The notes: generated by a model not told the origin, from the sequence alone. Shown: positions 2-7,413, counted from the stretch's first letter. The stretch is DNA of 64,000 nucleotides from Obrimoposthia wandeli (GCA_977020255.1 CDROCS010000506.1:2728001-2792000), one strand, 5' to 3'. Numbers and translations: made by a program.

Positions 2-790
2 ATCGCAGGACTAGCTGCTACAACAACGGCTAACGCACACCCACGTTGGGTATTACCATCGCATTTTACTGTATCAAAAGAAGGTGGTGATTGGTTAACG
101 TTTGACGTAACTGCATCACACGGTACGTTCGTATTTGATAAGCCTGCTGGCAGTGAATTTGCACAAGTGGTTATGCCTGATGGCCGTAAAGAACGTCCTA
201 ACTTTGTGATCCGCGGTAAACGTCGTTCTATCTTTGACTTCTACTTTGAAGAAGAAGGTACGCATAAAGTCGCGATTAACAATGTACCGTCTTATTACAC
301 GGCTTATAAAGCAGGCCGTCGCGACACGGTTAAACGCCTTCAAGCCAACAAAGCAGAACGTGCAAACTTACTGCCAGAAAAAGCACGCGATGTGAGCACG
401 CAATTGAGCTACACACGTGCAGAAAGCTATGTAACGGTTGGTATGCCAACAGAAAAAGCATTAGAAATCGAAGGTAAATACCTTGAAATGCGTCCACTGA
501 CTCACCCATCAGACATTGTTGAAGGTGAAGAGGTTAGCTTCCAATTCTTCTTTAATGGCGAACCACAATCAGGTGTTACTGCGGATATTACCCGTGAAGG
601 TACGTTATACCGTAATCACCAAGAGCAGATTGACGTAGTGAGTGACAAAGACGGTAAAGTAACTTTCACACCGAATGTTGCAGGTCGTTACTTGATGAAA
701 GCCAATTATAAAGGTGAGTTGAAAAATGATCCTATGGCTGACAAAGCAAGTGTGAACGTACACTTTACCTTTGAAGCGTTACTACAGTAA
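2..790 (+). CDS. DUF4198-family periplasmic metal-uptake-associated protein (5' truncated by window edge)
   Basis: Frame is open from base 2 and reads ...IAGLAATTTANA|HPRWVLPSHF, i.e. the end of a signal peptide followed by the N-terminal His-x-x-Trp typical of DUF4198. C-terminal GEPQSGV...SDKDGKVTF..AGRYL pattern also fits. The ORF-track start at 167 is internal. Confidence 0.8.
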   Translation: MAGLAATTTANAHPRWVLPSHFTVSKEGGDWLTFDVTASHGTFVFDKPAGSEFAQVVMPDGRKERPNFVIRGKRRSIFDFYFEEEGTHKVAINNVPSYYTAYKAGRRDTVKRLQANKAERANLLPEKARDVSTQLSYTRAESYVTVGMPTEKALEIEGKYLEMRPLTHPSDIVEGEEVSFQFFFNGEPQSGVTADITREGTLYRNHQEQIDVVSDKDGKVTFTPNVAGRYLMKANYKGELKNDPMADKASVNVHFTFEALLQ

Positions 791-818
791 TTTTCACTAC
801 TGTGAGTTAGTTACCTTT

Positions 819-855
819 AGCCTGTAATTAGATGAGATCTGATTACAGGCTTTTT
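819..855 (+). terminator. Intrinsic terminator-like hairpin inside the metal-uptake cluster
   Basis: agcctgtaattagat-gag-atctgattacaggct forms a 15-bp stem (one G-U) followed by a T run. Confidence 0.65.
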
Positions 856-915
856 CGCTCTATTTATTTATCGACTTATCTATTTTGTATGAGTCTATTT
901 CGTATTGAGGTTTTC

Positions 916-1245
916 ATGACAAAAATGGCAATCAAACCGACGCTGCTAGCGCTTTCATTAATGACGGGTTTATTTTCAGGTACCGCAAGTGCGCATTTCC
1001 CATTAATGAATTGCTGGTTCGAATCTGACAAAGTCGCTTGCGAAGCGGGCTACAGTGATGCCAGTACGGCAGTGGATTACGCTGTAAATATGTATGACTA
1101 CGATGACAACTTAATTGCCAAAGGCATGACGGATAAGCGCTCAATTGCTGAGTTTAGCAAGCCTGATACTGACTTCTATTTAGTATTCGATGCTGGTCAT
1201 GAAAACCCTGTTGAAGTTGACGTTGTTGAGATTAGCGAAAAATGA
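916..1245 (+). CDS. Small periplasmic protein, FpvJ-like
   Basis: GAGG RBS before ATG 916. Signal peptide ending ASA|H. Mature HFPLMNC...CEAGYSD...YDYDD..I...FYLVFDAGH pattern recalls Pseudomonas FpvJ (HNP.CEC..CTGGFSDG..FYVLFDAG). Gene position also matches. Confidence 0.7.
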   Translation: MTKMAIKPTLLALSLMTGLFSGTASAHFPLMNCWFESDKVACEAGYSDASTAVDYAVNMYDYDDNLIAKGMTDKRSIAEFSKPDTDFYLVFDAGHENPVEVDVVEISEK

Positions 1246-1880
1246 TCAGTCAATCAGTTCATCCAGATGATGGCGGTCGTGAAGGTAAATGGGTGGCGTT
1301 AATCATCATTGCCATTCTTGCAACGGCTGCACTGTTGTTACCTTATCACCAAAATGCATCAAGCGAAAAACAGCTCGCGCGTCATCAAATATCGATTAAA
1401 GATCTACCCACTGTAGAACTGGCGATGATCGGCGAATTACGCTTAGCGCATGAAGAAATCCGTAATATTCATCAAGACAATCTTGAGTTAGACAGCCCTG
1501 AGCTAGAAAGTGCTGAACTTAAAAGTAGAGATACTTGGCCGGATATGGCTGAACTAGATGAGCTGTGGTTAGCGCCCTTTATCATCGATAAAAGCTGGGA
1601 ACGTAAAGGTAAGCATGCGTGGCGTAAAGTTGCTCCGGCGTTATATCAAGGTATTCCAGCACTCACAACGGGTAGCGTTGCGGTGATATTGAATAGCCAA
1701 GCTGCAAGACCAGATGTGTGGTTAGCATTAGATATGCCAAATCCTGCGCCAATGATGGGCAGCACGCTTAATACCGCCGAGCTTATCAGTGCAGGTTGGA
1801 AGCAAGTTGTATTTACGGGTGATGAGACTGCTAATGTAGATCATGCCGATACAGCGCATACCGATAAAGACAGTCACTAA
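1242..1880 (+). CDS. Membrane-anchored protein, DUF6162/FpvK-like
   Basis: ATGA overlap with previous gene. One N-terminal TM helix, then ELRLAHEEIR, LAPF..D.SW..KG.H.W and PDVWL motifs. Confidence 0.7.
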   Translation: MISQSVHPDDGGREGKWVALIIIAILATAALLLPYHQNASSEKQLARHQISIKDLPTVELAMIGELRLAHEEIRNIHQDNLELDSPELESAELKSRDTWPDMAELDELWLAPFIIDKSWERKGKHAWRKVAPALYQGIPALTTGSVAVILNSQAARPDVWLALDMPNPAPMMGSTLNTAELISAGWKQVVFTGDETANVDHADTAHTDKDSH

Positions 1881-1912
1881 AGCGTAACGTCAGTTAATAA
1901 TGGAACGTAGCT

Positions 1913-1984
1913 ATGTTAATTACAAAAATGTTAATTACAAAAATGCCAATTACAAGAATGAAAAATAAAACCATGAAAAATCTA
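1913..1984 (+). repeat. 15-bp tandem repeat (ATGTTAATTACAAAA x2 plus degenerate copies)
   Basis: Units start at 1913, 1928, 1943, 1958 and 1973, each beginning with ATG. Confidence 0.85.
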
Positions 1985-2923
1985 ATCGTCGCAATCACTA
2001 CAAGTGCAGTATTACTGATGAGCGGCGCAGCACAAGCTGCAGAAAAACTCACTATCGGTATAACCCTACAACCTTATTACAGCTATGTGAAAGCAGTCGT
2101 GGGTGATAAAGCCAATGTATTGCCATTGGTTGATGAGGGTTTTAACCCGCATAACTACCAGCCACAACCAAACGATTTACGCCGTCTTAAACAGATGGAT
2201 GTGATTGTGGTGAATGCGATTGGCCATGATGACTTTGCCTTAAAAGTAATTAAAGCCGCAGACCGTGATGATCTTATTGTCATTAAAGCCAATAAAGACG
2301 TGCCGTTATTACCTGCAATTGGTCAATCTGTCGGTGAAGGTGCAGTAAATCCGCATACCTTTGTTGGCCTATCTACGACGATTCAAAAGGTTTATACCAT
2401 CGCTACAGAGTTATCGAAGATTGATCCTGATAACGCCCGTACTTACCGTAAAAATGCGCGTAAATATGCGACTGAATTTCGTAAAATGAAACGCCAAGCC
2501 ATGTTAACGCTAGGCGATCTAGATACCTCGGGCATGCTGGTGGCGACAACGCACAATGCTTACGGTTATATTCTGCAAGAATTTGGTGTCGATGTTGCGG
2601 CGGTCATTGAACCTGCACACGGTGTTGAGCCAAGTGCGAGCCAGTTACAAGAAACGATTGAAAAGATCCGCGCATCGAAGATTGATGTGTTGTTCTACGA
2701 ATTAAATATGCCAAGCCGTTATGTGGAAACGATTGAAGCAGCGACGGGCGTGCAACTTTACCGTTTCTCGCACATGACGCATGGTGCGTATGAAGAGAAC
2801 AAAGTGGCCGTTGAAATGAAAAGTAATCTTGATACGTTAGTCGAAGCAATGAAGTTTGCAGCGAAACGTTCATTGGCTGATACAGCAACTAATACGACAA
2901 CTAACATCAAGCAGGGGAGTTAA
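1913..2923 (+). CDS. Metal ABC transporter substrate-binding protein (cluster A-I), FpvC-like
   Basis: IGITLQPYYSYV, GFNPHNYQP, GHDDF, NPHTF, THNAY, PAHGVEPS and SHMTH motifs. The start is ambiguous because of five in-frame ATGs. Confidence 0.85.
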   Translation: MLITKMLITKMPITRMKNKTMKNLIVAITTSAVLLMSGAAQAAEKLTIGITLQPYYSYVKAVVGDKANVLPLVDEGFNPHNYQPQPNDLRRLKQMDVIVVNAIGHDDFALKVIKAADRDDLIVIKANKDVPLLPAIGQSVGEGAVNPHTFVGLSTTIQKVYTIATELSKIDPDNARTYRKNARKYATEFRKMKRQAMLTLGDLDTSGMLVATTHNAYGYILQEFGVDVAAVIEPAHGVEPSASQLQETIEKIRASKIDVLFYELNMPSRYVETIEAATGVQLYRFSHMTHGAYEENKVAVEMKSNLDTLVEAMKFAAKRSLADTATNTTTNIKQGS

Positions 2924-2925
2924 TC

Positions 2926-3666
2926 GTGGGTCCTGCAATTCGTTTACAAAATGTTGGTTTGAAATACGGTGATAATGTCATTTTAGAAGACATCTCACAC
3001 TTTTTATCTGCGGGTCAATGCCATGTGATCATGGGCCCTAATGGTGGTGGTAAAACATCATTATTACGTTCGATTTTAGGTTTAACCCCTTTCACGGGTA
3101 ATATTGATATTCAATGGCCTGAACATAAAGGCAATATCGGTTATGTGCCACAAAAGGCGACGTTTGAATCGAGCTTACCGTTTACGGTGATGGATTTTAT
3201 TCTGTTAAATCAGAGTCGTAATCCGCTGTTTTGGCGCAAGCGTAAAAAAGAACAAGATCATGCGTTAGCGCAATTAGATCGCGTTGGCATGGCGAACCGT
3301 ACTGACCGCCGTATGGGACAGTTATCCGGTGGTGAACAGCAACGTGTGTTATTCGCCCAGTCGTTATTAGATAACCCGGATCTGTTAGTGCTCGATGAAC
3401 CAACAACGGGCATGGATGAACAAGGTGTGCGTTACCTTGAGTCGCTAATTCATGAATTAGTACGTGAGAATAAAACCATTTTAGCCGTGCATCACGATGT
3501 CAGTGCTGTGCGCCGTTTAGATGGTCAAGTGCATGTGGTTAATCGTCAGTTAGTTGATTCAGGCCCTGTGTCTGAGGTATTACGCGCAGACAAGATCGAA
3601 CGCTTATTCAATCATTATACTGGTGGCAATGTATCGACTCTCAGCCCTGAACAAGGAGTTAAATAA
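2926..3666 (+). CDS. Metal ABC transporter ATP-binding protein, FpvD-like
   Basis: Walker A GPNGGGKT, LSGGEQQ signature, Walker B LLVLDEP. GGGGAG RBS before a GTG start. Confidence 0.93.
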   Translation: MGPAIRLQNVGLKYGDNVILEDISHFLSAGQCHVIMGPNGGGKTSLLRSILGLTPFTGNIDIQWPEHKGNIGYVPQKATFESSLPFTVMDFILLNQSRNPLFWRKRKKEQDHALAQLDRVGMANRTDRRMGQLSGGEQQRVLFAQSLLDNPDLLVLDEPTTGMDEQGVRYLESLIHELVRENKTILAVHHDVSAVRRLDGQVHVVNRQLVDSGPVSEVLRADKIERLFNHYTGGNVSTLSPEQGVK

Positions 3667-4541
3667 TGGATACTATCCGTCATTGGGCACAATTGGGCGT
3701 GGATGCTGGTTGGTTGAGTGAGAGTTTCTCTTATTCGTTTATGGTGAATGCCGTTGTCGCTGCCATCTTGCTTGGCCCGCTATTGGGTGGTCTTGGTACT
3801 TTGGTTATTGCTAAACGTTTAGCGTTCTTTTCTGAAGCGGTTGGTCACGCGGCATTAACGGGTATTGCCTTAGGTGTATTACTGGGTGAACCAGCTGAAA
3901 ATCCAATTATTGGTTTATTCAGTTTTTGCATGATCTTCGCATTGTTACTGCATTTTGTGCGTAACCGTACCAATGTACCTTACGATACTTTGGTGGGCGT
4001 ATTCCTTGCCTTTGCTTTAGCTGTCGGTGCGGCGCTACTGATGTACGTAGCGCGTAAGATTAACATTCACATGTTAGAGAATGTCTTGTTTGGTTCGATC
4101 TTAACGATCACTGATTATGACTTGTTGATCTTGGCGGTGACTTGCGGGGTCATTTTATTGGTATTGATACCCACCTTTAACCGTATTTTGTTAACTTGCA
4201 TCAGCCCTGATATTGCGAAAGTACGTGGTTACGCGACGAATTTTTATGACTACTTATTTGTCATGATGATCACGCTAGTAACTATTGCGTCGGTGAAAAT
4301 TGTCGGTGCGGTGTTAGTGGGCGCTTTGTTACTGATCCCTGGTGCAACGGCACGCCTGTTAACCAAGAACATGGGTAGCTTTGTACTTATGTCAGCGTTA
4401 TTAGCGACGATAAGTTGTTTGATTGGTACTATTTTACCAATGGAATTAAAACTGCCAATCCCTTCTGGCGCGGCGATCATTATTGTATCGACGAGCTTCT
4501 TCTTAACGGCAACCTGCTACCGCATTGTGCGTAAAGGATAA
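3666..4541 (+). CDS. Metal ABC transporter permease (ABC-3/ZnuB family), FpvE-like
   Basis: Multi-TM protein with EAVGHAALTGIA, ENVLFGSIL and GALLLIPGATAR motifs. Confidence 0.92.
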   Translation: MDTIRHWAQLGVDAGWLSESFSYSFMVNAVVAAILLGPLLGGLGTLVIAKRLAFFSEAVGHAALTGIALGVLLGEPAENPIIGLFSFCMIFALLLHFVRNRTNVPYDTLVGVFLAFALAVGAALLMYVARKINIHMLENVLFGSILTITDYDLLILAVTCGVILLVLIPTFNRILLTCISPDIAKVRGYATNFYDYLFVMMITLVTIASVKIVGAVLVGALLLIPGATARLLTKNMGSFVLMSALLATISCLIGTILPMELKLPIPSGAAIIIVSTSFFLTATCYRIVRKG

Positions 4542-4547
4542 TTGATT

Positions 4548-5432
4548 ATGACTTCTTCATTATTAAGCGTTAGCGCGGCTGTATTGCTACTAACATCAAC
4601 ATTGGGCTTTAGCCAAAAGGTAAGTGCTGCAGACATTCTTACCGCGACGCCGGTGACTTATATGTTAGCGACGGAATTAACTAAAGGCACGGATATTACC
4701 ACGCAGTATTTACCGCCAAAACGTTACGGCATATCGCGTTTGCCGAACTGGTTTAGTTCGAAAGGCGCAACGTTAACAGAGAAAGCGGCGATTGATGCGC
4801 AAGTAGCGATTACCTTAGGTGCTGTTTGGCCACAAGATCCGTTATTTGTGCATGCGCGTAAAGGTAACATTCGTATGATTGAAGTGGATGCATCGCAAGC
4901 CATTTCACCACGAGCACAAGGCGTTGCTGCGCTGCGTTTAGACGACGGGACTATCTCGCCATACACTTGGTTAAACCCAACTAACTTAACGCGTATGACG
5001 GCTATTGTGAGTCAGGATTTACAACAAGTATGGCCACAGCAAGCAGCGACAATTGCCAGCAATCAACAAGCTTTGATGATGTCAGTACGTCATTTGATTA
5101 ATCAACAACAAGCGATGTTGCTAGACAATGAGATTGACTCTGTGGTGTTGTTATCAACAGAGCTAGAAGACTTTGCTTCGGGTAATCAGTTGTTTGTGGT
5201 TGAGCGTTTAACCAAACCTGAATTGGAATGGACGGCGGAAGATAAGCAGGAATTGGTTGAGCTATTAACTGAAGACGATAGCTTATGGGTGCTGACCTCG
5301 AAAAGAGCCAGTAAAGCGCTTAAAGCATTAGTGCCAAATCCGACACGTATCTTAACGATTGATAGTATCGATCGCTGGGGTCGTGGCATTAAAGCGGATA
5401 AACCATTACAACGCTGGCAGTTAGCGCTTTAA
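4548..5432 (+). CDS. Second, atypical ABC substrate-binding protein, FpvF-like
   Basis: Signal peptide. ATPVTY.LA.EL.KGTD, W..DPLF..AR.GNIR.IE.DA and PY.WL.P.NL.RM motifs. Contains only two His. Confidence 0.75.
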   Translation: MTSSLLSVSAAVLLLTSTLGFSQKVSAADILTATPVTYMLATELTKGTDITTQYLPPKRYGISRLPNWFSSKGATLTEKAAIDAQVAITLGAVWPQDPLFVHARKGNIRMIEVDASQAISPRAQGVAALRLDDGTISPYTWLNPTNLTRMTAIVSQDLQQVWPQQAATIASNQQALMMSVRHLINQQQAMLLDNEIDSVVLLSTELEDFASGNQLFVVERLTKPELEWTAEDKQELVELLTEDDSLWVLTSKRASKALKALVPNPTRILTIDSIDRWGRGIKADKPLQRWQLAL

Positions 5433-5520: not shown

Positions 5521-7413
5521 TTACAAACGAAACTGACCAACAATACCGTCAAGTCGATTCGCCATACCACCGAGCTCTCTGGCTAATACGGTCGTTTGCT
5601 CTGAATCACTGTATGACTGTTTAGCTGAATCATTAAGCTCAACGACACTGCGATTAATATCAGCGGCAACATGATTCTGCTCTTCTGCTGCGGTGGCGAT
5701 TTGATTATTCATATCTTGAATAACTGAAACTGAGTTTAAGATCGCGCTTAATGCGGTTTGTGCTTCCGATGTTTTGCTTGATGTTACTTTGGCATCATTG
5801 GAATTGTTAATCATTAAGTCGACAGACTTCTTCGCTTCTGATTGCAGTTTGGCAATCATCACTTGGATCTCTTCGGTACTTTTCTGCGTACGACTTGCTA
5901 GACTACGCACTTCATCGGCAACAACAGCAAAGCCACGACCTTGCTCACCGGCACGTGCAGCTTCAATCGCGGCATTCAGTGCAAGTAGATTGGTTTGGTC
6001 TGCAATGCCTCTGATCACATCCAAAATACTGCCGATGCTTTCAGTTTCTTTTTCCAGATTTAGAATAACATCACTGACGTTACCTATGTTCAAGACCAGT
6101 GTTTGGATGTTGTCGTTCATGTCTTCGATAACAGCAATACCGGTTGCCGAACTTTCGTTCGCATCGTTGGCTGCATCAGATGCTTGTAGTGCATTACGAG
6201 CCACTTCATCAACTGTAACAGTCATTTCGTTCATCGCCGTTGCAGTTTGCTCTAACTGCTCTGTTTGCAGCTTAGAGCCATCACTGATATTCGTCGCAGA
6301 TGATGATAGCGTTTGTGATGATTGATTCAATTCGCTGGTGGTTTGATTGATTTCTTCAATCATGCCTCTCAGGTTGTTGATCATGACGAGTACATTGTAA
6401 TAGATACCCGTCTCGTTACCTGTACTTGTCGTACGCATTGTTAAATCGCCATCAGATACACGTTGTACCAATTTAGATATCTCTTCTGGTTCTCCACCAA
6501 TAGGGCCATAAACTAACTTGGTTACAATTGCATAGGTACATAATAGGAATATGGCAATTGAAATCAGTGAAATGATGATGGTTGAAATGAGCGCATCTTG
6601 GCTATCTTGTTCAACCACGTCAACATCTTCGTAATTAACCACTGTCCATGGGAATGCGTGCATCTTTTTGCTGACAGCAAAGTAAGTGATACCTGTTGGC
6701 GCCGTGTAGTGGATATCAGCACTGTCAATGGACCTAAAAGCATTGTAATCAGGACGGATTTCAAAGATATTCTTAGTCAGGTTGTTCACGTCACTTGCTG
6801 CGAGGATAAAGCCATTATTGCGGAATACAAACAGATTGTTATGGTCTGATAAAGTGTCGATAAAATCAGTGATGGCTGATAATTTTAACTCGATTGCGAT
6901 GGTTGCTATGATATTGCCATTTTTTATAATGGGTACGGCCAGCGCAATAACAGCATGATTATCGGTATTCTTATAATCTGCCGTAATGACACGTTCTAAC
7001 TTTTGGTTGAAAACCTGATTATACCAATCACGATTTTTAGCTTTCGCATTAAAACCAGCGATATAACCACTATCGACGAAGGCTTCACCGGATTCTAAAC
7101 CAATAAATACGCGGTCAACGCCAAGTCTACGTTGTAAATTAGCTAGGGCTAATTGCACGTGTTCCGGATCATCTAAATAGCCGTCTTCATCAAAGCGTAA
7201 GGAAAAGTTACCTACAGAATCTAATACGTCAAAATAGCGCATTATTTTTTCATCTAGGGCATTACCTACAAGGGTTGAGTTCTCATATAATTTTGATTCA
7301 AAATTTTGCACGCTCGATTGCCTAAAATTCATATAGGCAGAGGTTGAAATCGCCACCACGACAATAATTAATAAAATTGAATTAATGAATGCGAATTTAT
7401 TTTTTAACGTCAA
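5521..7413 (-). CDS. Methyl-accepting chemotaxis protein (dCache-type sensor, HAMP, signalling domain)
   Basis: Two TM helices flanking a periplasmic domain with RDWY. Signalling core [40 protein letters not shown] start with a GGAG RBS. Confidence 0.95.

Follow-up and report, generated by a model that had tools for sequence, protein, structure and literature searches.

In the present work we describe a nine-gene operon of a Moritella bacterium which, at a rough probability of 70%, we take to be a Fur-controlled operon for the reductive release in the periplasm, and the import, of chelated iron. Its distal part lies in a 64,000-nucleotide (nt) stretch of DNA, in the following called the window, from the Obrimoposthia wandeli assembly GCA_977020255.1 (contig CDROCS010000506.1, here C506, positions 2728001-2792000), and it joins a trio of PepSY-like, DUF2271 and DUF4198 genes to a capture and import set that corresponds to FpvJKCDEF of Pseudomonas. 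The iron reading is based on the homology to a system proven to act on iron, on the literature about the trio, on an operator in common with an iron-regulated receptor operon, and on the strict co-inheritance of reductase and importer. The numbers presented here concern homology, gene order and the conservation of residues and operators, from which we infer all of the biochemical steps.

The nine genes, all on the plus strand, occupy C506:2726643-2733432. The operon starts 1.36 kb to the left of the window, which holds the distal six-and-a-bit genes, and the remainder was read from the left flank (L004, C506:2720001-2729000; a position in L004 equals the window position plus 8000). A sequence-only reading of the window had listed seven co-oriented genes, and all of them are present where it had placed them and are tightly packed. 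The host bacterium is, to judge from protein similarity, a Moritella; the small protein of the operon is identical (100%) to that of M. dasanensis ArB 0140, and the first binding protein (SBP1) shows 92-94% identity to Moritella proteins.

The capture and import half is homologous to the Pseudomonas Fpv system

In P. aeruginosa, the FpvGHJK-FpvCDEF system (PA2403-PA2410) serves the periplasmic release of iron from pyoverdine. FpvG and FpvH are a proven iron reductase pair for which a physical interaction has been reported, FpvF binds pyoverdine and not the metal, and FpvH, FpvJ and FpvK were given no function in the pyoverdine work. As a comparator we used a Pseudomonas-type locus (L089, genome G380) that was taken from an even sample of 400 genomes of the class and is not that of strain PAO1. 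Its binding protein matches FpvC in the PDB (6R3Z/6RU4) at E 6e-158, and its genes encode, in this order, FpvG (PepSY_TM plus PepSY, 400 amino acids, aa), FpvH (179 aa), FpvJ (109 aa), FpvK (DUF6162, PF19659, E 7e-46), FpvC, the ATPase, the permease and FpvF (a weak ZnuA match), with protein sizes that agree with the published 46, 21, 15, 36 and 33 kDa.

In a one-way BLAST search of the L089 open reading frames (ORFs) with the Moritella proteins, J, K, C, D, E and F were all matched. The small secreted protein (109 aa, 83 aa when mature; window 916-1245), which belongs to no Pfam family, matches FpvJ (34% identity, E 2e-19), and the DUF6162 protein (212 aa, one N-terminal transmembrane helix; 1242-1880; PF19659, E 6e-13) matches FpvK (28.5%, E 6e-22). 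SBP1, a cluster A-I binding protein of the FpvC type (1913-2923; PF01297, E 4e-50), is 51% identical to FpvC (E 2e-105), the ABC (ATP-binding cassette) ATPase (2926-3666; PF00005, E 2e-26) 41% to FpvD (E 4e-62), the ABC-3 permease (3666-4541; PF00950, E 1.3e-54) 53% to FpvE (E 4e-98), and the degenerate second binding protein (SBP2; 4542-5432; ZnuA score of 28.5 bits, just below the threshold of 29) 32% to FpvF (E 2e-34). The order J-K-C-D-E-F is identical in the two loci. The proposal that an Fpv-like module exists outside Pseudomonas is thus borne out, as each of the six distal proteins has its homologue at the same place in the gene order, although at 28-53% identity the Moritella proteins are rather distant from their Pseudomonas counterparts.

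The same does not hold for the proximal genes. The Moritella PepSY-like, DUF2271 and DUF4198 proteins gave no BLAST match among the L089 ORFs, including FpvG and FpvH, at E 1e-3, and an FpvH query found nothing in the genomes of M. dasanensis or Vibrio harveyi. The J-K-C-D-E-F half is hence common to both systems and the reductase half is a different module. Both systems have a six-His binding protein, a second binding protein that lacks metal ligands and a PepSY-type membrane protein encoded in front, but here there is neither FpvG (a PF03929 protein of about 400 aa that contains a PepSY domain) nor FpvH, and a 246-aa PF16357 protein, DUF2271 and DUF4198 stand in their place. The sequence-only reading had pointed to the upstream flank as the place to look for an FpvG reductase, and a PepSY-type membrane protein is indeed encoded there, but it belongs to PF16357 and is not FpvG. 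DUF4198, which had been regarded as a lone extra component, turns out to be the third gene of a PepSY-like/DUF2271/DUF4198 module that replaces FpvG and FpvH. The two systems further differ in their control elements, which here are Fur-like and PeuR-type boxes. No pyoverdine genes were found in the flanks that were read; the whole genome was not searched for them. The named control genomes had PepSY_TM matches only in Caulobacter, Deinococcus, Bacteroides and Corynebacterium.

The predicted reductase half: a PepSY-like/DUF2271/DUF4198 trio

The first gene of the operon encodes a PepSY_TM_like_2 membrane protein of 246 aa (L004 6643-7383, outside the window; PF16357, E 6e-55), the second a secreted DUF2271 protein of 181 aa (L004 7393-7938, outside the window; PF10029, E 7.5e-46) and the third a periplasmic metal-binding protein of the DUF4198 family with 278 aa (L004 7954-8790; PF10670, E 1.8e-47), with gaps of 9 and 15 nt between them. 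The DUF4198 gene is cut by the window edge, its start lying 46 nt to the left and positions 2-790 within the window (E 1.5e-47 for this part). By its families, the trio is the PepSY-like module that was previously predicted to be a periplasmic ferric reductase. In a large survey, 3,220 clusters with a PepSY-like protein were reported, usually together with ApbE, DUF2271 and DUF4198, iron reduction was argued for, and DUF2271 was shown to be flavinylated by ApbE; these clusters were associated with VIT1 ferrous transporters or had no defined Fe(II) acceptor (Meheust et al. 2021, PMC8238504). In Alteromonas, DUF4198/DUF2271 pairs (MASE_17430/17435) are induced by iron limitation and lie beside iron-responsive receptors (PMC7190382). 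The Caulobacter cluster CCNA_03155-03159 is part of the iron-limitation response and insertions in it lower fitness under ethylenediaminetetraacetic acid (EDTA), while VciB, a relative in V. cholerae, promotes the reduction of Fe(III) (PMC12004947). The operon described here has in common with the surveyed clusters the PF16357/DUF2271/DUF4198 trio and the tie to iron limitation and TonB-dependent receptors. It differs from them in that ApbE and often a gene for an NAD-binding/flavin reductase are present there and neither is found here, and in that the trio is joined to a complete capture and import set of the FpvJKCDEF type.

At the flavinylation position of DUF2271, 75 of 81 orthologues have DAVTSAT and five DGVTSAT; in further DUF2271 proteins of this assembly, DAITGAT or DAITGAS is found there. 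In the PepSY-like protein, for which three helices are predicted, two His adjacent to the helices (in RRLH and LNDLHKG) are conserved, which recalls the haem ligands of FoxB. Like FoxB and VciB, it is an inner-membrane protein of the PepSY family with conserved His beside transmembrane helices and is encoded beside iron-uptake genes. FoxB, however, has four helices and two haems in one chain, whereas the protein here comes with a separate flavin carrier and, having three predicted helices and two conserved His, would have to form a pair. The mature DUF4198 protein begins with a His in 81/81 orthologues.

Distribution and gene order

With a profile of the small protein, relatives were found in 117 species genomes, and gene order was compared over the best 80 loci. 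The nine genes are colinear in 80/80 of these, which belong to Moritella, Photobacterium, Vibrio and Aliivibrio. An FpvC-like protein at E < 1e-50 is present, besides the reference, in 2 of 400 evenly drawn genomes of the class, and DUF6162 in 10 of 401 evenly drawn Pseudomonadota, always within J-K-C-D-E-F. The latter ten genomes show two architectures, namely FpvG-FpvH plus JKCDEF in four (one of them with two copies) and the PepSY-like trio plus JKCDEF in six. The system had been ascribed to a marine bacterium that is not a pseudomonad, which agrees with Moritella, but it is not the oddity of a single bacterium: it is standard equipment of the Vibrionaceae and Moritella and rare outside these groups.

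Three further loci deviate in their gene content. One of them (L088) has JKCDEF without any adjoining PepSY gene. In another (L090, 11783-13621, genome G264), a PepSY_TM protein of 611 aa, the C-terminal part of which matches FpvH, is encoded in front of J-(K)-C-D-E-F. By sequence, this protein is a natural fusion of FpvG and FpvH, which agrees with the reported physical interaction of the two. A second paralogue is found 1.3 kb further on in this locus, beside a protein with a DM13 electron-transfer domain. In a metagenome bin of P. citronellolis (L087), G-H-J occur alone (699-2712), without FpvK or the ABC genes, and the FpvH-type gene (176 aa) matches PF27732 and UCP029505. FpvJ here travels with the reductase pair and not with the importer, and this FpvJ-like copy has no second His (GPGY, not GPGH).

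A composite operator in common with a receptor/TonB2 operon

Upstream of the first gene, the single part that is conserved across the four genera is a 50-nt block composed of two elements (composite operator; L004 6549-6599). One is a Fur-like box, GCCAATnnnAAynATTATC, which matches 13-16 of the 19 positions of the Fur consensus and lies 50-72 nt before the start codon; it is found at this spacing in about 7/8 of the 80 loci and is there the best match of the 330-nt region. The Moritella box (L004 6572-6590) has 14/19 matches, and for comparison the 64-kb window contains four matches with at least 14/19, none of which reaches 15. The other element is an invariant GTAAA-N4-GTAAA directly before the Fur-like box. 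Strict searches that tolerated three mismatches at most returned neither a Fur nor a Zur box, and a scored scan over 81 orthologous promoters was used instead, in which no Zur match rose above background. Of the features that the sequence-only reading had proposed to look for in the flank, a conserved Fur-like box is present, a Zur box is not, and the receptor does not adjoin the operon in Moritella.

In about 50-60 of the 80 loci, the operon immediately follows, in the same orientation, a receptor/TonB2 cluster with the order TonB-dependent receptor, DUF3450 (TtpB), TtpC, ExbB, (ExbD), TonB and TPR protein (TtpD). By its arrangement, this is the peuA-VPA0151-0156 cluster of V. parahaemolyticus. 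There, peuA (VPA0150) and the TonB2 operon VPA0151-0156 are repressed by Fur and, at alkaline pH, activated through PeuRS when enterobactin is present, and the peuA promoter contains a Fur box and a GCAAA-N4-GTAAA 'CpxR box' (PMC4141801). PeuA imports ferric enterobactin in this species. We had also considered the upstream cluster to be an orphan TonB3 system, in view of the receptor gene in first position, and rejected this, as the VPA0150-0156 and VPA0159 tags and the location on chromosome 2 fit TonB2. Since VPA0159 is a COG5266 (DUF4198-type) protein and the gene order agrees, the nine genes are most likely VPA0157-0165. The published work ended at VPA0156 and did not cover the nine genes downstream, and no mention of VPA0157, 0158, 0160, 0162, 0163 or DUF6162 was found in the searchable literature.

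The motif G[TC]AAA-N4-GTAAA is present in 80 of 81 operon promoters and in 18/18 receptor promoters (those lying far enough inside the fetched loci), as compared to 11 other places in the 3.0 Mb scanned, and in both promoter kinds it is followed at the same spacing by ATGCnAAT...ATTATCA. The Moritella receptor cluster carries the same operator as the nine-gene operon and is preceded by an intact response regulator gene and a split sensor kinase. Because of the common composite operator, the nine-gene operon and the receptor operon look like one regulon. Concerning the cognate ligand, which had not been apparent from the window, the question is no longer wholly open, given the operator in common with a peuA-type receptor operon; a first hint would be that the ligand is whatever the peuA-type receptor imports. 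As to the split kinase itself, the peuS-like sequence (L118 2403-3481, G000:C506:356402-357480, minus strand) comprises at least two ORFs, one with sensor and HAMP and one with HATPase, and the split reflects either a disruption of the gene or indel errors in the assembly.

The two binding proteins

Among PDB chains, SBP1 matches FpvC (6R3Z) at E 8.4e-88, and the next family, PsaA-type manganese proteins, follows at 3e-26, so that SBP1 is about 60 orders of magnitude nearer to FpvC than to ZnuA, PsaA or MntC. The entry 6R3Z is P. aeruginosa FpvC with Ni bound in a six-His site. The His motifs that had been read from the window sequence are real, and six of them (NPH, GHD, NPH, T-H-N, AHG and SH) also occur in the FpvC of the crystal structure, with conservation in 78-79 of 79 orthologues. 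Regarding the N-terminus, positions 1913-1957 consist of three tandem 15-nt units (ATGTTAATTACAAAA twice, then ATGCCAATTACAAGA), each with an initial ATG in frame. The true start is probably 1958 or 1973, because the tandem units would give a repetitive N-terminal extension before the signal peptide. SBP2, in turn, has no conserved His or Cys; its conserved positions are aromatic, Arg and acidic. Such a lack of metal ligands fits FpvF, and we presume from these residues that SBP2 binds the chelator or acts as a partner protein.

All close homologues of SBP1 carry public names of the zinc/manganese family ('zinc ABC transporter substrate-binding protein'), and the Pfam families of the importer (ZnuA, ABC_tran, ABC-3) are those of zinc and manganese systems. 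One could hence regard the operon as an auxiliary Zn (or Mn) importer of the ZnuABC/SitABCD kind in which DUF4198 is a zinc buffer like Zcp of Neisseria, a DUF4198 protein that binds Zn and is Zur-regulated. We consider this highly improbable. With Zn/Mn binding proteins, SBP1 has in common no more than the Pfam superfamily, and it stays far below the cut-off of every NCBIfam Zn/Mn equivalog (the best is AztC, with 127 bits versus 350). In addition, V. harveyi has a separate ZnuA-like gene (26% identity), the Zur-box scores in the 81 promoters do not exceed background, and the Moritella DUF4198 protein aligns to Zcp-like PDB chains weakly and in its C-terminal part only, such that the zinc ligands of Zcp are not mappable. 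By its best matches, the operon is thus not a plain ZnuABC or SitABCD system, since similarity to FpvJ, FpvK and FpvF was found and SBP1 itself is so much closer to FpvC.

FpvJ, FpvK and the relation to NikL

The mature small protein starts with a His (H27) in 81/81 orthologues, and C33, C42 and H95 are invariant; this arrangement is also that of Pseudomonas FpvJ. Among 1.8 billion representatives, a profile search picked out 214 clusters, most of which are 100-130 aa long with the pattern A-H...C...C..GFSDGS...DAGxGH. Large repetitive proteins that also came up in this search were dismissed, as their match is confined to an acidic DYDDN stretch. Longer relatives with a C-terminal membrane helix pass the NikL model NF058648 (cut-off 100) at 159-175 bits, while the Moritella small protein reaches 37.9 bits, over profile positions 4-99 only, and FpvJ 31.2 bits, over the first half only. 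Because both match the first half of the model only and the longer, membrane-anchored relatives pass it, FpvJ and its Moritella counterpart are, by this profile evidence, soluble versions of the periplasmic domain of NikL. No statement on a NikL-type nature of FpvJ was found in the searchable literature.

The AlphaFold2 model of the small protein is a seven-strand beta-sandwich (predicted local distance difference test, pLDDT, 94.6) with generic beta-sandwich matches only, the best being the MG1 domain of E. coli alpha-2-macroglobulin (Z 13). In the FpvK-like protein, a transmembrane helix at the N-terminus is followed by an alpha/beta domain on the periplasmic side, where His125 is invariant, and by a flexible C-terminal tail of low confidence. 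This tail is rich in His (two or more within the final 12 residues in 70 of 81 orthologues), and Pseudomonas FpvK is alike in this respect. The model of the FpvK-like protein (pLDDT 87) has no clear fold match in the PDB (best Z 6.2). With generic matches for the one and none for the other, the fold gives no function for either the small protein or the DUF6162 protein.

The likeness to NikL raises the question whether the metal could be nickel or cobalt. The operon would then serve Ni/Co or broad divalent-metal uptake, with DUF4198, which is of the NikK-type family (COG5266), and the small protein, homologous to the periplasmic half of NikL with its N-terminal His, passing the metal to the six-His protein and the ABC importer, and with PepSY and DUF2271 serving another purpose. 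Such a function would be in line with the DUF4198 protein of Ideonella, which binds Ni at 18 nM through its N-terminal His, with the Ni in the FpvC crystal, and with VPA0159 having once been called orthologous to nickel transporters. However, the small protein here is without the membrane anchor, its partner is a cluster A-I ABC importer, and no NikM, NikQ or NikO genes of a Ni/Co energy-coupling factor (ECF) system are present in the operon. A NikR-type palindrome was not seen by eye in the conserved operator, which instead resembles Fur and PeuR-type boxes and is common with a receptor operon that is regulated by Fur and iron in V. parahaemolyticus. The homologous Pseudomonas system acts on iron, and the transmembrane reductase module, which would have no role for Ni(II) or Co(II), is co-inherited in 80/80 loci. 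From our point of view, uptake of nickel or cobalt is therefore unlikely.

A hairpin between the two halves

A terminator-like scan revealed a hairpin at 819-851 (plus strand; 15-bp stem, 3-nt loop, followed by T5), which sits between the DUF4198 and FpvJ-like genes and splits the reductase half from the capture and import half. The small protein begins at 916; the ATG at 832 is not its start and lies inside the hairpin. A GC-rich hairpin was found at this junction in 16/16 folded loci from four genera, with unrelated sequences.

Taken at face value, such a strong terminator-like hairpin could mean that the halves are two independent neighbours, the trio reducing another substrate such as Cu(II) or an organic oxidant, JKCDEF being an Fe(II)/Mn(II) importer, and the hairpin a true terminator. 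PepSY_TM proteins can indeed serve copper metabolism, and JKCDEF occurs without an adjoining PepSY gene in L088. We nevertheless regard this as very unlikely. In the loci of the harveyi clade the junction measures just 44 nt, which leaves no room for a second promoter, and neither a promoter-like site nor a Fur-like box was found 5' of the small gene. Furthermore, the halves occur together in 80/80 loci and in 6/6 independently sampled genomes, and the other lineage has JKCDEF after FpvG-FpvH, the proven iron reductase pair. It is likely that the hairpin is an attenuator or an mRNA-stabilising structure within one operon that would provide more of the first three products.

Neighbouring genes and the assembly

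Downstream, the operon unit is closed by a convergent gene for a methyl-accepting chemotaxis protein (5521-7413, minus strand). Directly 5' of the operator lies a gene for a Cys-rich lipoprotein of 90 aa with an acidic tail (L004 6229-6501, C506:2726229-2726501), which is present in Moritella loci only (66-77% identity) and has no family match; further upstream, there is an unrelated PhoH/PIN ATPase gene. A diverged second copy of the operon (74-79% nucleotide identity) is located on another contig of 340 kb (G000:C666:20191-24799). C506 is a bacterial contig of 3.78 Mb, and the whole assembly comprises 1.35 Gb in 6,912 contigs, many of which are bacterial. Because of the many multi-megabase bacterial contigs, it behaves like a metagenome or like a host with associated bacteria.

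The proposed route of iron and its weak points

The sequence of events that we envisage for the Fur-controlled iron operon has experimental backing in its entry step alone, in V. parahaemolyticus, and rests on homology and comparison for the others. Under iron limitation, probably together with a PeuRS-type signal, the operon would be expressed along with the unlinked receptor/TonB2 operon, whose operator is alike, and the receptor would bring the Fe(III) chelate into the periplasm, as PeuA does with ferric enterobactin. The PepSY_TM_like_2 protein, presumed to bind haem like FoxB, would pass electrons across the inner membrane to flavin mononucleotide (FMN) bound covalently to the Thr of DAVTSAT/DGVTSAT in the secreted DUF2271 protein, and the flavin would reduce the Fe(III), with the FpvF-like protein, which is without metal ligands, handling the chelator. 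The resulting Fe(II) may be caught by DUF4198 (via its N-terminal His), the FpvJ-like domain (N-terminal His and His95) and the FpvK-like protein (His125 and the His-rich tail), and would finally reach the six-His site of the FpvC-like protein, from which the FpvDE-like ABC importer is supplied. The earlier idea that the module uses the same reductive-stripping logic as in Pseudomonas is hence supported by homology and by the genes in the flank; iron dependence and stripping we infer.

A number of points weigh against this proposal. The metal is not fixed by homology, since the FpvJ-like domain is related to NikL and the FpvC crystal holds Ni, and the DUF4198 proteins studied so far bind Zn (Neisseria Zcp, by three His) or Ni (Ideonella), not Fe. 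The TSAT of the DUF2271 motif is near the published consensus [S/T]GA[S/T] and not identical to it, and no ApbE gene is found in the operon or its flanks; the M. dasanensis genome has four ApbE paralogues elsewhere. With regard to control, the Fur-like box, at 13-16/19, could be part of a longer response-regulator site, the Moritella receptor cluster (C506:346-356 kb) lies 2.37 Mb from the operon, and the equation with VPA0157-0165 rests on one locus-tag annotation plus gene order. Lastly, intact ferric enterobactin has a very low reduction potential, and reduction alone may not release its iron; an esterase gene is not present in the operon. Intact, this chelate strongly resists reduction; the actual substrates could be catecholates after hydrolysis, or other chelates.

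Implications

Each half of the operon is of a known kind, and the joining of the two is new to the searchable literature, in which we found neither this junction, nor its spread in the Vibrionaceae and Moritella, nor the operator in common with the peuA/TonB2 operon. A predicted reductase trio is here joined to a complete FpvJKCDEF set and conserved as such over four genera. Since this weld is kept in four genera, and since JKCDEF is found, in the even Pseudomonadota sample, only behind two alternative PepSY-type modules, there is comparative support for three ideas, namely that the trio is an iron reductase, that JKCDEF is a generic unit for the capture and import of Fe(II), and that FpvJ and FpvK are parts for metal hand-off. 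The public annotation of the operon genes as zinc transporters is corrected at the same time.

For V. parahaemolyticus and its relatives, the nine genes adjoining the TonB2 operon are the likely inner route for receptor-borne iron. As a tentative extension of this thought, one could speculate that the operon supplies the part through periplasm and inner membrane that has been missing from the PeuA/TonB2 xenosiderophore route in the Vibrionaceae and Moritella, with a chelator-tolerant reductive stripping by a reductase with haem and covalent flavin, of another build than FpvG/FpvH, that delivers Fe(II) into a relay of His proteins. On this view, FpvJ, as a soluble protein of the NikL type with an N-terminal His, and FpvK, as a membrane-anchored protein with a His tail, would obtain their first concrete roles in Fe(II) hand-off, in Pseudomonas as well. 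Dissolved iron in seawater is mostly bound to organic ligands, and a ligand-tolerant reductive route in abundant marine heterotrophs would consequently have ecological weight.

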